Sequence record: NC_006556.1
Reading direction: 5' to 3' (one strand)
Length of the DNA stretch: 20,933 nucleotides
Under the pieces are notes generated by a model that worked only from the letters and a program-made list of their open reading frames with translations, had not been told where the DNA came from and did not search any database. A program made the position numbers and the translations under genes. Shown piece after piece: positions 1-7,222 of this stretch (its first letter is position 1; each line of letters opens with the position of its first letter).

Positions 1-61
1 TGACACGCTATTTGTCTGTACTTTAAAGATTGATAGAAACGCGTGTTTGCATGAAGCCATA

Positions 62-111
62 GGGGGAGAAAACGGCGTGGGGTTATGGGGGCCTTGGGGC
101 CCCAAAAGGCC
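62..111. other. G-run cluster overlapping a perfect 12-bp palindrome near the left end
   Basis: G5 (62-66), G4 (79-82), G5 (87-91), G4 (96-99); TTGGGGCCCCAA at 94-105, flanked by GGCC at 90-93 and 108-111. Confidence 0.6.
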
Positions 112-121
112 ATGTCTCTAT

Positions 122-148
122 GTGATATCGCCTATTTATAAAGGTATC
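122..148 (-). promoter_or_regulatory. Leftward promoter (GATACC-TTTATAAA) with a GATATCAC box
   Basis: The minus strand reads GATACCTTTATAAA, like the promoters at 1713-1728 and 2111-2126. The box is at 122-129 and a minus-strand ATG at 113 lies about 26 nt from the TATA centre. Confidence 0.45.
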
Positions 149-171
149 TCAGAGGGGTATTACGCGAAAGT

Positions 172-181
172 GTTATATAAC
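172..181 (+). promoter_or_regulatory. TATA box of the helicase gene
   Basis: Palindromic GTTATATAAC; TTATATAA begins 29 nt before ATG 202. Confidence 0.6.
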
Positions 182-201
182 TGATAGATTTGATAAGAGT
201 C

Positions 202-1716
202 ATGGAAATCATAGGCGGGAACGCAGACAGTGGGAATTCCTCACCTAGTCAGCCGACCACAGTAGGTCCAGAACTATATAAACTTATCGTCAAGGAGTAC
301 CGCAATATAGGGGCGCTAGACGACAAAATATATGTAGAACTTAGGGACGGGCGCCAGCTTGAGGTTTGGGTCCACACTAGGCATGTATTCCTATATAACG
401 GCGAAAGCGGCAATAAGAAGGAAAAGCCGATTGTCTTTAAGGTAAGCAAATGGTTGGTCAACTGGCTGGCGAAAATGGCTGGGTATAAGGGCGTCAAGGT
501 CCTCAAATACACCAAATGCGTTGAGGGGGAGTGTATTATCCCGCTTTGGTCTTACGACGATAGGGAACCTATGGTGGTGGTCGTGAGTGATGAAGACGTG
601 CCTAAGCCGATACACAGCGGGAAGACGTACGTTAAGGACGGATATCTATACGTGGCCGATTATTATTACGCCTCACTAGTCCAGTTGCCGGTCTACGACG
701 GCAATTGTGACATAGAGAAAATCAAAGAGGCCATTAAGGAGAATTGGATTTTGACCTATCTGGCGGCCATGCCGTATATATTGCCCCATATGCCTAAGCG
801 CCATATTCCAGTGGTCATGGGCCCCATGCGTAGTGGAAAGACGACGTTGCTGGACTCACTTGACTGGGACGGTCTGCGTATAGTGGGCTCAACTGCGGCG
901 GTCAGAAACCTATTGGGGTTCCACCACGTGCTGGCCGACGACGCGGCTGAGGACCTCACTATAAAATTTGAGTTTATCGGCCTCCTTAATTCCTATTTCG
1001 ATAGGGCGCCGCTAATGCGCGTTAGCCCCAATAGCCCCAATAAGACCCTCTACTTCCCACTAAGGGGCGCTTTGGCCATAGCCACAAACAACCCACAGAT
1101 AATGCTGAGGTCTACTCTGGACAGAATAGCGGTTGTCTATGCGCCAAAGGTGTTGAGGCAAAGGCTGAAAATTGATGGCGAATTGCTGTCGTGTCTGGCC
1201 TATATGCCTAGGATTGGGCCAATCTACCTACAATCCTTTAAGGAGTTCTGGGGCATGGGCCACGAAAATACCGTGCTGACAAATGCGGTAGTAGAGGGCT
1301 CAAGCATGTTGGACTTGGCGGGTGATCCGTGGCTGTCGGTTTTGAGGTGGCTTTGGCGGGAGTTGTATAAGATACGGTCAGAACACGGCTGGGAGGGCGC
1401 CCCGCCTCAGTATAAGCTTGACATAAAAGGTAAGGACCATATCTGTATCCCGATACCTAAGTTGGTGTCACCGATAGCCGACTACACGGTAAACGTCTCG
1501 GCATCTATACACAAAGACGATAAGGTGTCTACTACAAAATCGATAAGTTACAACGCGTTTCCAATACGTACGCCACAAATAGAACTCGTGTTACGCGGCA
1601 TGGACCTCCCAGCGTTTATACATAGAGGGCGGACTAAATACTATGTTTGTACCGACGACCCAGAGGCCCTTTATCAAATGATTTCGAATATCCTCAAGGA
1701 ACCCGTATCTCAGTGA
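202..1716 (+). CDS. SF3/D5-like AAA+ helicase (replication ATPase) with a C-terminal, probably winged-helix, domain
   Basis: Walker A GPMRSGKTT, Walker B HVLADD, motif C LAIATNN and LDRI. ATG 202 is preferred over TTG 190 because of TATA spacing. Confidence 0.75.
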   Translation: MEIIGGNADSGNSSPSQPTTVGPELYKLIVKEYRNIGALDDKIYVELRDGRQLEVWVHTRHVFLYNGESGNKKEKPIVFKVSKWLVNWLAKMAGYKGVKVLKYTKCVEGECIIPLWSYDDREPMVVVVSDEDVPKPIHSGKTYVKDGYLYVADYYYASLVQLPVYDGNCDIEKIKEAIKENWILTYLAAMPYILPHMPKRHIPVVMGPMRSGKTTLLDSLDWDGLRIVGSTAAVRNLLGFHHVLADDAAEDLTIKFEFIGLLNSYFDRAPLMRVSPNSPNKTLYFPLRGALAIATNNPQIMLRSTLDRIAVVYAPKVLRQRLKIDGELLSCLAYMPRIGPIYLQSFKEFWGMGHENTVLTNAVVEGSSMLDLAGDPWLSVLRWLWRELYKIRSEHGWEGAPPQYKLDIKGKDHICIPIPKLVSPIADYTVNVSASIHKDDKVSTTKSISYNAFPIRTPQIELVLRGMDLPAFIHRGRTKYYVCTDDPEALYQMISNILKEPVSQ

Positions 1717-2626: not shown

Positions 2627-2684
2627 GAAGAAAAAGGAGGAGAAAAAAGAGGAAGTTGTCAAGGGGGCGATAGGGGTCTTTTAG
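2619..2684 (+). CDS. Possible 21-aa micro-protein MPKKKKEEKKEEVVKGAIGVF
   Basis: ATG overlaps the end of the upstream gene and follows GAGGT (SD-like, 2612-2616). It could instead be just the complement of the minus-strand gene's terminator. Confidence 0.3.
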   Translation: MPKKKKEEKKEEVVKGAIGVF

Positions 2685-3631
2685 TGGGCGGCTAAGAGGA
2701 TAAGTAGGGCAACGCTCAGCGGTAGTCCCACGAAATAGTAGAGTTTTTTGTTCAGTAGGGTGAATTTTGCGATTACGGCGTAGATATTTAGCGGGTGTGG
2801 GTACATCAACGCGGCGGCTGGCATCATATACAGCATTACCGCGGGCACAGAGACTTGGTCGTGGACGGCTGAGGCAAACATGGTGGCCATGGCTTCCACG
2901 TCTCCCGCCTCACNCCCAACGGNCATGGCGAATAGGGCGCGGATTATGAAGGCGGTAAGGAGGTCNGGGACAGAGGCCAAGAAGGTAGAGGTGATGCCTA
3001 GGGTTTGTTCCGCTAGGTGGATTTGATAGAGGGAGTCGGTTAGGAAGTAGGACGATATGGNCATGCTTATGGTGTTGAATAGCGTNGTGACTATGACGGA
3101 CTTAGGCGGAATCATGCCGGCCTCTGTCCTATATGTCAGNACGATTATAGTGGGCAACACCAAATAGCCTATCGCTATGTAGGCCCCAGCTATGAGGTGT
3201 AACGGCAACTGGAATCCCGCAGATATTAGATATGTCAGTAGGTTTACGCTTAGGGCCGCAACGGACCACAGTATTAGGTAGTGGACCCCCTTCCATATGT
3301 AGTCTGAGCCTATTATGTCTCTGCGCGTAAATGCCGTGACTATTATGCTGTCAACTATCGTAGAGGCTATGGTGTCTATCCAAGCGGCCAGAATATGTCC
3401 GTCCGCCATGAGCTTGATGGCCATTATGGCTTGGGGCAAAGCTATGAGCGCAGAGACCACGAGTACGTTGAACCAAATCGTGACGCGGTATAGGCTCAGA
3501 GTTATCTCTGTGGCGTAGGCCGTCGTGACCATTATGGCAATCCAAATCGCTATATTCAGATAGGGGTTGTTCACAAAGAACATGGCTATCGTGAGCCCCG
3601 CCACAACCGCGTTCAGTATTTTCAAGTCCAT
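2681..3631 (-). CDS. CaCA-superfamily (Na+/Ca2+ exchanger-like) multi-pass membrane protein with degenerate motifs
   Basis: About 10 hydrophobic segments and two alpha-repeats: ALIALPQ...DTIASTIVD and FLASVPD...ATMFASAVHD, matching GTSLPE...GNxxGSNxxN. Contains 6 ambiguous bases. Confidence 0.7.
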   Translation of the reverse strand: MDLKILNAVVAGLTIAMFFVNNPYLNIAIWIAIMVTTAYATEITLSLYRVTIWFNVLVVSALIALPQAIMAIKLMADGHILAAWIDTIASTIVDSIIVTAFTRRDIIGSDYIWKGVHYLILWSVAALSVNLLTYLISAGFQLPLHLIAGAYIAIGYLVLPTIIXLTYRTEAGMIPPKSVIVXTLFNTISMXISSYFLTDSLYQIHLAEQTLGITSTFLASVXDLLTAFIIRALFAMXVGXEAGDVEAMATMFASAVHDQVSVPAVMLYMMPAAALMYPHPLNIYAVIAKFTLLNKKLYYFVGLPLSVALLILLAAH

Positions 3632-3656
3632 GCACTAATTTAGCCTATCTAAAATA

Positions 3657-4094
3657 TTGTACGTGCCCAGAAAGAAGAAAGACGAATTGGCTGAGGCCGA
3701 ATTCGGGCCGGCCACGCTTAGGCCGCTTCCGGACTCTCCCGTATTGGCCGTCATAGTATCGCCTACATGTCCGGCGTGTAAGCGGTTGTTTAAAAGCAAA
3801 AGCGCAAAGTACTACATCAATAAGGGGTGGATTAGAGTTATGGAGGTCGGCAACGCAGTGAGGCTAGGTCTGGCCGAATACGCCCTTTCAGACCTAGGCA
3901 TGACTATGAGGCTGGCAACGCCAACCTACATCATATTCTGTCCGGACGGCCAAGTGTTCTTTAGGGTGACCGTCAATATGTTTGACGACCACGACGCGCT
4001 CACCAATATGGTCATTAATGTATATAGGGAGTACTTAAGGCTAGTAAAGTGTAAAAATACTGAGCCGGTTTCTGAACATGAGCAAACCGTGTGA
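3657..4094 (+). CDS. Thioredoxin-fold protein with a CPAC active site
   Basis: beta-strand VLAVIVS, then PT-CPAC-KRL, later the cis-Pro motif LATPTYIIF and the DGQVFFR hairpin. The real start may be GTG 3663 (MPRKKKD). Confidence 0.7.
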   Translation: MYVPRKKKDELAEAEFGPATLRPLPDSPVLAVIVSPTCPACKRLFKSKSAKYYINKGWIRVMEVGNAVRLGLAEYALSDLGMTMRLATPTYIIFCPDGQVFFRVTVNMFDDHDALTNMVINVYREYLRLVKCKNTEPVSEHEQTV

Positions 4095-4710: not shown

Positions 4711-5349
4711 ATGACGACCAGGCTGAAACTCTTNGATATGGTCCAGCGGAAGATATTCACGGCGAATCTCAACCCAGACAAAATCTGTGTCTCAAGCCAG
4801 ATATATGAGTGGTTGGGTTTGCCCAGCACTAAATGCGTACCGATAACGCCAACGACTCAAGCCGAAATAATGAGGGTTGCCGTCCCTATGGCGGACGGCC
4901 TTTACGCCATGGCGTATATAGTGCCGGACACAATAAGGTTGATACATAGCTATCTATTCACGTTCTCTTTCGCAGAGACGAAAGTGTTTGAGGTGTTGTA
5001 CGACGCTAGGCTGGGGGCTTATGGCGTCGTGATGCAGAATAAGTTCATGCCGCTAAGTAGTCTTGAGCCGTTTGTCTGCGATAACGTGGTGGGGCTCACT
5101 AGGCTGTGTTATATAATCGGTGATGTCGTGACTGTGAATGGCCACGCCAAGGTCGTAGGCTATACGACTCCCGAAATATACCGCATGTGGGTACGCGGCG
5201 TTGCTGAGCGGAATCTCAGCGATTCTGTGTTGACGATACCCTTGAGGGTTCACCGTGAGTTGGTCACCGAATATGAGACCATGTTAGCCAGTTGCGTGAA
5301 CAAATCACGGCGGTACATGCAGATACCGCGTCTTTGTTTGAGGGCATAG
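4711..5349 (+). CDS. Hypothetical protein (212 aa)
   Basis: Long ORF in the operon with no recognisable motif; weak AbrB-like VLTIPLRVHREL near the C-terminus. Confidence 0.75.
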   Translation: MTTRLKLXDMVQRKIFTANLNPDKICVSSQIYEWLGLPSTKCVPITPTTQAEIMRVAVPMADGLYAMAYIVPDTIRLIHSYLFTFSFAETKVFEVLYDARLGAYGVVMQNKFMPLSSLEPFVCDNVVGLTRLCYIIGDVVTVNGHAKVVGYTTPEIYRMWVRGVAERNLSDSVLTIPLRVHRELVTEYETMLASCVNKSRRYMQIPRLCLRA

Positions 5350-6364: not shown

Positions 6365-7222
6365 ATGGACTTGAGGACTATATACACGGCGTCTGTATTG
6401 GCCGCGGCTATAGTTACGGCTTTGGTCGGTTTCGTCGTGACTGAGAGTTTGTTGGCCCCCATATTGATATTCCTGACGGTGTTGGCGATATTTGACTACT
6501 GGGGCTATGAGGCCGCCAAGGTGGTGGCGCCCATGACTATGTTCCTATACACTCTGGCGTTCTTTGGCGCGCTATCGGGCGTCCAGCTTATCATAATAGC
6601 CGCGGTCATAATAAGCGCCTTGGCGCTTAAAGAAAAGCCGAAATTGGCCGGTCCTTGGCACGCCACTCTGGCGTATCCCCTCAGATTGGCCGCGTTGGCC
6701 CCCCTAGTGTTGTTGTTGGGGCCCCTCTATTTGATATACGACGCGGTTAGGCGTGGCGGGATAATATATAAGGCCGCGGCCGTGTTGGGGGCAATCGGCA
6801 TGGGCCTATTCATGTTTGGGAGGCCCTTAAGCCTATGGGTAGACCCCCATGTGATGTCATTTGGCTGGCTGGCCCAGATTCTCCCCCCAGAGGCCAATCC
6901 GATATACTGGGTAGGCGCGATTGGGTGGGAGGAATTGATATCTAGGGCGATTGGCCCTCTGGGAAACGCGTGGTGGGCCATAATGCACCTCCCCTCTAGG
7001 CTGGCCGCATTACCCGTATTGCCGGCTATAGGTATTGTCCTATTGATAAATATAGGCGGGCGTTGGCTGTGGGAGACCTATAAGGAGGGCGGCCTAATAG
7101 GGTCAATTATAGGCCATGCCGTATACAACGCCATGGTGTCGGCTTTCGCTTTGGGGATACAGTGGTGGCCTACGCTAATAATAATATCTATAATACTATA
7201 TGCCACTTTCAGAAAACCATAA
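6365..7222 (+). CDS. CPBP-family (Abi / type II CAAX) intramembrane glutamic protease
   Basis: Multi-pass protein with E189-E190-x3-R194, W204-x3-H208 and H251-x3-N255 (YKEGGLIGSIIGHAVYN). Confidence 0.85.
   Translation: MDLRTIYTASVLAAAIVTALVGFVVTESLLAPILIFLTVLAIFDYWGYEAAKVVAPMTMFLYTLAFFGALSGVQLIIIAAVIISALALKEKPKLAGPWHATLAYPLRLAALAPLVLLLGPLYLIYDAVRRGGIIYKAAAVLGAIGMGLFMFGRPLSLWVDPHVMSFGWLAQILPPEANPIYWVGAIGWEELISRAIGPLGNAWWAIMHLPSRLAALPVLPAIGIVLLINIGGRWLWETYKEGGLIGSIIGHAVYNAMVSAFALGIQWWPTLIIISIILYATFRKP

Follow-up and report, generated by a model that had tools for sequence, protein, structure and literature searches.

gp04 of Thermoproteus tenax spherical virus 1, a hallmark globulovirus gene, is predicted to encode a CaCA-fold membrane protein with a rearranged ion pocket

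Introduction

The closest described system is ORF3 of the globulovirus PSV2, for which a published HHpred search returned a 95.5% match to bacterial and archaeal cation exchangers (bioRxiv 10.1101/2020.01.16.907410; ISME J 2020); exchanger-like homology has thus been in print for this orthologue since 2020. Here, its counterpart in Thermoproteus tenax spherical virus 1 (TTSV1; Globuloviridae), gp04 (YP_164345), was analysed as a candidate member of the Ca2+/cation exchangers (CaCA). The window, that is, the whole stretch of 20,933 bp under analysis, is the complete TTSV1 genome (NC_006556 / AY722806). The gene is the open reading frame (ORF) 2681..3631 on the minus strand, the stop-free translation of which is 316 amino acids (aa) long, and its GenBank label is still 'hypothetical protein'.

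About 98% of globulovirus proteins are without recognisable relatives (bioRxiv 10.1101/2020.01.16.907410), and for that reason a confident fold for a hallmark gene such as gp04 is one of the few experimental handles on globulovirus biology. What is new here is the fold assignment for gp04, the conserved and redistributed carboxylates, the isolation of the family in sequence together with its restriction to globulovirus-like elements, and the evidence against a recent host origin. Neither the residue-level rewiring nor the hallmark status of the gene appears to have been described previously.

Predicted fold of gp04

A template-free AlphaFold2 model of gp04 was generated with a 14-sequence alignment as input. 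The model had a predicted local distance difference test score (pLDDT) of 88.5, a predicted template modelling score (pTM) of 0.86 and 11 long helices, and superseded a single-sequence model with a pLDDT of only 51.8. An independent model of gp04 in BFVD superposed on it at a TM-score of 0.95. The 10-transmembrane (TM) core of the CaCA fold, composed of two inverted 5-TM halves, was present.

The original prediction, made from the letters of the window, had described the ORF as a virus-encoded CaCA homologue and proposed a structural comparison with NCX_Mj and CAX. Indeed, when the PDB was searched with Foldseek the top 19 matches were all CaCA proteins (VCX1, YfkE, CAX_Af, NCX_Mj and AtCAX1), with a probability of 1.00 and TM-scores of 0.44-0.65 at E-values of only about 2e-3; unrelated transporters scored about 0.15-0.2. 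Alignment of the model with VIA-align gave Z 21.9 for CAX_Af (root-mean-square deviation 3.6 Å, 296 residues, model 1..316) and Z 21.1 for NCX_Mj (3.8 Å, 267 residues, model 19..315), the next unrelated fold scoring Z 7.5. An exhaustive alignment against 48,161 representative chains placed seven CaCA representatives, including human NCX1 and NCLX, at the top (Z 18.7-20.9), and the next chain reached Z 10.4 over only 87 residues. Across the structure comparisons, the CaCA representatives scored Z 18.7-21.9 over 263-297 residues. Alignments to CAX, YfkE and VCX1 began at model residues 1-4 and those to NCX_Mj at residue 19. A protein-language-model search with the closest homologue free of X residues returned PF01699 in 98 of 100 matches, the top match being a Thermoproteota CaCA cluster. 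A predicted structure devoid of the CaCA inverted-repeat fold, which the original prediction had named as refuting, was thus not what was obtained, and on the strength of these models gp04 is almost certainly a CaCA-fold homologue.

Sequence relation to cellular exchangers

Three sets were compared by sequence: 30 YrbG-type (canonical) CaCA proteins from Thermoproteota, 30 copies of a divergent CaCA of the host lineages, and the 19-member viral family that includes gp04. With hhalign, the viral family matched the canonical proteins at E 0.017 (probability 3%, no secondary structure supplied), viral TM2-3 falling on the cellular alpha-2 repeat, and the collinear full-length alignment gave E 0.15 (probability below 4%). 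The top score was 24.5, whereas 60 column-shuffled profiles reached at most 16.7 and the reversed profile 13.2. This alignment was free of gaps; it paired LPQ with LPE, S90 with the S of GSNxxN and D94 with its final N. The C-terminal half, aligned with cellular alpha-1, scored 17.8 (maximum of 14.0 in 30 shuffles) and set PD on PE, and S254/D258 on the S and the final N of GSNxxN. That both CaCA alpha-repeats can be aligned in gp04, as had been claimed, was thus borne out by scores above those of all 90 shuffled controls.

Membership of a particular CaCA family was not indicated by signature. The GTSLPE-type signature of NCX/YrbG proteins was missing in both repeats, which read LIALPQ and LASVPD, and TIGR00367 gave no match in the TTSV1 genome at E up to 10. 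The extra N-terminal helix of CAX proteins was present in gp04, and the GNxxE motif was found in neither repeat.

Conservation and the ion pocket

Pairwise identity among the 19 members of the viral family fell as low as 21% (mean 38%), and the key residues of the four motifs quoted in the original prediction were invariant. All four motifs occurred in the translation: LIALPQ at residues 62-67, IASTIVD at 88-94, LASVPD at 218-223 and FASAVHD at 252-258. The third is printed as LASV-X-D, and its reading as LASVPD stands, the codon of X222 being CCN, which specifies proline with any base. Of the 24 invariant columns, 20 lay in TM2, TM3, TM7 and TM8, which comprise 104 of the 316 residues (33%; hypergeometric p = 1.7e-7), and TM0, TM4, TM6 and TM10 contained zero invariant residues. 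The invariant residues were N55, S60, P66, Q67, G78, A82, D86, S90, T91 and D94 in alpha-1, and G212, P222, D223, T250, M251, A253, A255, H257, D258, Q259 and P263 in alpha-2.

Pocket correspondences were read from the gap-free local sequence alignments, with the residue identities of NCX_Mj checked against the PDB sequence through alignment with an archaeal CaCA protein. By these alignments P53 and E54 of NCX_Mj would correspond to P66 and Q67, each invariant in 19 of 19 members; A47, N73, S77 and N81 would correspond to S60, D86, S90 and D94, which were likewise invariant; and T50 and S51 fell on the variable positions 63 (I, M, A, V or S) and 64 (A, S, T or V). In the second repeat P212 was matched by P222 (invariant in 18 of 18 members), and E213, N232 and D240 by the invariant residues D223, T250 and D258, the last flanked by invariant H257 and Q259. 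A206, T209, S210 and S236 fell on the variable positions 216 (T or A), 219 (A, T or G), 220 (S, T or A) and 254 (S, A or G). Q67, S90, D94, D223, S254 and D258 each lay near the middle of a helix in the model.

Features expected of a CaCA site were in part retained. The helix-breaking proline was kept in both TM2 and TM7 (P66 and P222), the model showing a helix break at 221-223. An acidic residue directly after this proline was found in alpha-2 (D223), and alpha-1 has the invariant Gln67 at that place. The polar or acidic pairs of TM3 and TM8 were present (S90/D94 invariant; D258 invariant, with S, A or G at 254), with a TM8 register that was not unanimous. The register that places D258 on D240 is most likely the correct one, as it came from the better-scoring local alignment and D258 lies near the middle of helix 242-269.

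The family and hhalign alignments therefore bear out the proposal that ion-site positions are altered relative to NCX-type exchangers. The claim that the motifs are rewired stood in part. It held for LIALPQ, with Gln at the E54 position, and did not hold for LASVPD as an exotic sequence, since the alpha-2 repeat of eukaryotic NCX and NCKX naturally reads GTSVPD, with Asp at the 213 position (PMC8366772). Among cellular CaCA proteins Asp was common at the N73 position (12/30) and rare at the N81 position (2/30). Judged by the alignments, what is truly unusual is the combination of Gln in place of E54 with Asp in place of N81, and the pocket is rearranged, not destroyed, with three carboxylates kept and one shifted from TM2 to TM3. 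The family would thus constitute a natural experiment in which one 'catalytic' carboxylate of CaCA has become Gln and the neighbouring helix has gained Asp, under strong constraint at about 90 °C. Knowledge of what gp04 transports would put to the test current views of the way in which the 12 residues of the pocket govern ion selectivity and coupling.

The pattern of conservation bears on the possibility that gp04 is an exapted, transport-dead CaCA fold which moves no ions and acts as a scaffold of envelope or budding sites or as an anchor for viral proteins. Loss of the Glu54 equivalent (Q67) and of the Gly, Thr and Ser of the signature would suit such a role, as would the enveloped virions of globuloviruses. 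So would the company of gp04, whose surroundings include two further genes for conserved membrane proteins, gp11 (CPBP-like) and gp15 (two helices), and which adjoins the gp11 homologue in one distant relative. A scaffold, however, has no need of three buried Asp residues, a His and a Gln midway along four helices, together with both prolines, held invariant across 21-50% identity, and it is the surface or lipid-facing helices TM0, TM4, TM6 and TM10 that are without invariant residues. We know of no transport-dead CaCA family. This explanation is considered unlikely.

Membrane topology was assessed from the charged loops. With the helix limits of the model, the Arg/Lys-rich loops (R49; R103-R104; R168 and K177; K294-K295) were all on the side of the TM5-TM6 loop, and the loops on the opposite side of the membrane included no Arg/Lys-rich loop. 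The model would accordingly place the TM5-TM6 loop in the cytoplasm, the C-terminus outside and, through the extra helix, the N-terminus inside as in CAX. Cellular CaCA proteins have the same orientation, with the TM5-TM6 loop cytoplasmic and the C-terminus outside.

Three hot-spring metagenome runs from one study (2024) contained contigs about 97.5% identical to TTSV1 over 3142-3700, placing a close TTSV1 strain in environmental material that was sequenced many years after the isolate of 2006. Over gp04 residues 1-163 this strain differed by 12 base changes, of which 9 were synonymous and 3 non-synonymous, with one further intergenic change. The non-synonymous changes produced two substitutions, I80T and V116A, neither at a motif. 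Small as the sample is, this variation is consistent with purifying selection on gp04.

Proposed function and alternatives

For what gp04 does, that is, transport, the ions moved, the location of the protein and its role in infection, we infer the following. With a probability of roughly 0.6, gp04 would be an active coupled cation exchanger with an altered ion site. It would retain the parts required for alternating access, namely the helix-breaking prolines of TM2 and TM7 and a polar and acidic cluster at mid-membrane. The carboxylates of this cluster would be redistributed, the Glu of TM2 being replaced by Gln67, TM3 gaining Asp94, and TM7 and TM8 contributing Asp223 and Asp258, the latter between His257 and Gln259. 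The binding site may be centred on the Q67/D94/D223/D258 tetrad, equivalent to the 'Smid' site of NCX_Mj, of which alone N81 and D240 are part (PMC4753433, PMC8366772). Ion specificity or coupling would be unlike 3Na+:1Ca2+ exchange, and coupling to H+ is plausible because an invariant His stands next to Asp258.

Strong selection on precisely the pocket residues argues for a working ion-binding transporter rather than a scaffold. Heavily changed CaCA sites may still transport: in NCLX, 9 of the 12 ion-coordinating residues are unlike those of NCX_Mj and transport is retained (PMC8366772), and NCLX and eukaryotic NCX together provide by analogy a precedent for an active gp04. Globulovirus virions are enveloped and the infection is described as chronic and non-lytic; gp04 would act in the host cytoplasmic membrane during such an infection and may be carried into the lipid envelope.

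Several results weigh against this reading. A search of NCBIfam with gp04 gave no match at E up to 10, and PDB sequence searches gave none with the single protein (phmmer) or with the family profile (hmmsearch). The two viral halves, compared with each other by hhalign, gave E 0.66 in the wrong register and no internal-repeat signal, so that the alignment of both repeats to CaCA is founded on the cellular repeats and the fold, not on self-similarity. The weaker full-length alignment moved TM8 by four residues, which set D258 on S236. gp04 lacks the Gly, Thr and Ser of GTSLPE, and the E54 position was E or D in 58 of 58 cellular CaCA proteins with a residue there, and Q in none. E54 and E213 are the main catalytic carboxylates of NCX_Mj, and Ala mutants lose 25-50-fold in kcat/Km (PMC4753433); by its aligned position Gln67 could represent a loss of canonical Ca2+ binding. 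No published transport assay for any globulovirus protein was found in the literature.

At the extreme, gp04 would be unrelated to CaCA, a generic helical bundle or an AlphaFold artefact with chance motif matches. The weak statistics (hhalign E 0.017-0.15 with probability below 4%, Foldseek E about 2e-3) and the empty NCBIfam and PDB searches could be read in this way. Such a protein would not be expected to score Z 19-22 over 263-297 residues with every CaCA representative and with nothing else, the next match being Z 10.4 over 87 residues. The alignment scores exceeded all 90 shuffled controls, the language-model search and the published HHpred result agree, and the conserved residues coincide exactly with the pocket positions of CaCA. 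Chance resemblance is thus scarcely credible.

A different concern is that the altered site may no longer couple fluxes; besides an altered substrate, the original prediction had proposed a channel or leak with a role in superinfection exclusion or budding. With one of two central carboxylates neutralised and the repeats made unlike, exchange could uncouple, and gp04, acting like a viroporin as a channel, uniporter or leak, would dissipate host ion gradients or membrane potential, for instance to exclude superinfecting viruses or to aid release or uncoating. Ion-conducting membrane proteins are frequent among the products of enveloped viruses, and a chronic, non-lytic infection makes gentle manipulation of the membrane plausible. 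Yet the full 10-TM alternating-access architecture and both prolines are kept, a constitutive leak would impose a heavy cost on a host that chronic infection requires to stay alive, and to our knowledge no CaCA member acts as a channel. Nothing in the sequence separates a leak from coupled exchange; a leak is regarded as possible, if improbable.

Coupled exchange admits a more far-reaching form. gp04 and its relatives might be a sixth, virus-only CaCA family with a Q/D/D/D(+H) tetrad, carrying out a transport other than that of Ca2+ against Na+ (for example, H+-coupled movement of Mg2+, Mn2+ or another cation) and residing in the virion envelope, where it would determine the ionic state of the core of helical nucleoprotein in assembly or uncoating. 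This proposal is speculative and distinctly unlikely. If true, a secondary transporter would here take the place filled by small viroporins in other enveloped viruses.

Distribution, origin and rarity

Orthologues of gp04 were present in 4 of 4 cultured globulovirus isolates, with tblastn identities to the TTSV1 protein of 46.7% (TSPV1 GP2), 42.5% (PSV2 ORF3) and 36.1% (PSV gp03). About 15 further relatives came from hot-spring metagenomes or metagenome-assembled genomes (MAGs). An HMMER (phmmer) scan of 1.84 billion representative proteins recovered only 12 relatives and word-indexed searches of 5.8 billion proteins six more, none of the relatives from either search carrying a Pfam call. A search of viral contigs for related loci found no gp04 relatives, and the only PHROGs match was the gene's own function-unknown group, phrog_33563. 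The search of genome contigs yielded one globulovirus contig, of 16.8 kb and binned in a Pyrobaculum MAG, which was syntenic with TTSV1 from gp04 through gp16. In a distant 17.7-kb virus-like contig the gp11 homologue (L006, 10950-11942) was directly downstream of the gp04 homologue. A 13-kb virus-like contig (JGI 3300021973, Ga0232635_1000220) had gp04 alone in common with TTSV1 at the level of BLAST. The inspected contigs with gp04 homologues were all virus-like. Given this distribution among isolates, metagenomes and MAGs, few genes of the wider globulovirus group are as broadly conserved as gp04, a hallmark gene.

The Pyrobaculum and Thermoproteus lineages carry a divergent CaCA of their own, with the signatures SSPE and VIPE (Pyrobaculum MAG JBEULK01, contig C84, 1333-2337; homologues L041-L069). 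It scored only 25 bits against TIGR00367 and, with one query protein, turned up in 43 of the 101 genomes sampled from the class. The existence of such host genes, together with the Thermoproteota CaCA cluster at the head of the language-model matches, raises the question of whether gp04 was recently captured from a Pyrobaculum or Thermoproteus host and duplicates a host function. The host-type protein, however, matched canonical CaCA at E 3.8e-22 and the viral family at E 0.21 (hhalign), and on this contrast recent capture was rejected. In addition, 30 of 30 host sequences retained Glu at each of the two signature positions, and the 12 proteins retrieved from the 1.84 billion representatives were all family members, free of Pfam calls, from contigs that proved virus-like where inspected. 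A recent host origin is thus very unlikely.

A canonical archaeal CaCA query matched 10 of 50,697 phage or archaeal-virus records, none from a cultured virus. Faecal metagenomes accounted for eight of them, all 'Bacteriophage sp.' contigs without annotation; of the other two, one (3.7 kb) bears a Salmonella phage label and one is a Salmonella chromosome record. The canonical CaCA proteins encoded on the human faecal contigs (MT835791, MT837945 and others) shared 30-43% identity with an archaeal YrbG-type protein, and their genes may be genuinely of phage origin or come from misbinned bacterial DNA. With a single other CaCA-fold protein in BFVD, from a giant virus, these counts agree with the original statement that ion transporters are rare in small viral genomes. 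A multi-pass secondary transporter in a viral genome of 21 kb would be highly unusual.

Gene neighbourhood and sequence quality

In PSV and PSV2 the gp04 orthologue directly follows, on the same strand, a large gene whose product carries in PSV2 the annotation of an AAA+ ATPase-domain protein and was ClpB-like in a published HHpred search (bioRxiv 10.1101/2020.01.16.907410). In TTSV1 and TSPV1 gp04 lies near the same large gene, at the same genome end and on the opposite strand. The large gene is gp01 of TTSV1, at 202-1716 (+), with counterparts at L003 515-2092, L004 996-2741 and L002 4449-6050, and occupies the same genome end in all four isolates; TTSV1 gp01 was not recognised in the NCBIfam search.

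The other large multi-pass membrane protein of TTSV1 is gp11, at 6365-7222 (+), which bears the motifs of a CPBP/Abi-type intramembrane protease (EELISR, then HAVYN near the C-terminus) and had no match in NCBIfam. It was tried as a paralogue of gp04 and rejected (BLASTP E 11). The 13-kb contig Ga0232635_1000220 also contained four paralogous genes of about 300 aa each (L007, 1209-4042 and 7299-8222), three of them directly upstream of the exchanger-like gene. Their products combine a hydrophobic segment at the N-terminus with numerous N-x-S/T sequons and a common C-terminal 'GPHVH' motif, and are possibly glycosylated surface proteins.

The start codons of gp04 (-) and gp05 (+) are divergent and only 25-31 bp apart (window 3632-3662). 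The gap contains an AT-rich, partly palindromic stretch (TCTAAAATATTG), which is possibly a TATA box for a leaderless gp04 transcript, perhaps shared or back-to-back with gp05. The divergent layout recurs in the globulovirus contig binned in the Pyrobaculum MAG (L008). The coordinates of gp04 and its features are collected in Table 1.

Table 1. Positions in the TTSV1 genome of gp04, its predicted structural elements, aligned pocket codons and upstream AT-rich box
Feature	Position	Strand	Remarks
gp04 coding sequence	2681..3631	-	316-aa predicted CaCA-fold integral membrane protein with 11 predicted helices; ORF, annotated coding sequence and AlphaFold2 model
Extra N-terminal helix, residues 3-17	3581..3625	-	From DSSP on the model; precedes the 10-TM core, as in CAX-type members
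Alpha-1 repeat, TM2-TM3, residues 52-102	3326..3478	-	Family alignment; gap-free hhalign register LPQ/LPE and STxVD/GSNxxN
Alpha-2 repeat, TM7-TM8, residues 208-269	2825..3010	-	Family alignment and hhalign; helix break 221-223 in the model
Gln67 codon CAA	3431..3433	-	Aligned position of the essential Glu54 of NCX_Mj
Asp94 codon	3350..3352	-	Aligned position of Asn81 of NCX_Mj
Asp223 codon	2963..2965	-	Aligned position of Glu213 of NCX_Mj
His257-Asp258 codons	2858..2863	-	D258 most likely at the position of Asp240 of NCX_Mj
AT-rich box, minus-strand reading ending in ATATTTTAGA	3649..3658		18-27 nt upstream of the gp04 ATG; read from the sequence

The ORF contains exactly the six N bases to which the original prediction had drawn attention, at 2914, 2923, 2966, 3061, 3086 and 3140. 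Three of the affected codons are resolved by degeneracy (GTN, V164; ACN, T182; CCN, P222). The ambiguous residues are 191 and 237 (S, P, T or A) and 240 (G, C, R or S), all at variable columns outside the motifs. The TTSV1 record has ten N bases, the four outside gp04 being at 4734, 11428, 18782 and 18805; the clustering of six of the ten within 227 bp of gp04 (2914-3140) suggests a locally poor read in the original sequencing of 2004-2006.

Comparison with known systems

PSV2 ORF3, described as a putative membrane transporter or cation exchanger (Baquero et al. 2020), is a direct orthologue, with 42.5% identity over 90% of gp04. It has the same set of invariant motifs, lies at the same genome end and adjoins the AAA+ ATPase gene. 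Its description comprised the 95.5% HHpred result and nine predicted TM helices, and included neither a fold model nor an ion-site analysis nor mention of TTSV1 gp04. The only other viral protein with the fold in BFVD is A0A3G4ZPM1 of the giant virus Terrestrivirus (probability 0.99, TMq 0.62). That protein of 439 aa is encoded in a large genome and was named from a recognisable exchanger domain, whereas the genome that encodes gp04 is 21 kb long, and the curated sequence models searched did not recognise gp04.

Among cellular proteins, the CAX family (CAX_Af 4KPP, YfkE 4KJR, VCX1 4K1C and AtCAX1) gave the best structural score against gp04, the N-terminal helix included. The His beside a pocket carboxylate recalls the CAX motif GNxxE(H) (PMC8366772). 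The CAX signature, however, is without Pro and has its Glu-His in TM7, whereas gp04 has a Pro-containing, NCX-type signature with Glu in neither copy and with His-Asp in TM8.

The YrbG/NCX-type exchanger NCX_Mj (MJ0091, PDB 3V5U) has in common with gp04 the 10-TM inverted-repeat core, its topology, and, in TM2 as in TM7, a Pro ahead of the key polar residue. From the signature to TM3 the distance is equal as well, Q67 being followed at +23 by S90 and at +27 by D94, as E54 of NCX_Mj is by S77 and N81. The differences, at 10% identity, would be E54Q, N81D, E213D, N73 to D86 and N232 to T250; replacement of the G, T and S of GTSLPE by L or A, by I, M or A, and by A, S or T; and the invariant His257 and Gln259. 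The link between TM7 and TM8 is eight residues longer in gp04, and the N-terminal helix is extra.

The Na+ or Li+/Ca2+ exchangers of the NCLX/CCX type, which match gp04 structurally at Z 18.7 (NCLX), provide the precedent for a working CaCA with a heavily changed site, their signature GNGAPD having Asp for Glu (PMC8366772). NCLX thus retains a carboxylate at position 54, where gp04 has the uncharged Gln, and carries at positions 50 and 209 Asn residues that are missing in gp04.

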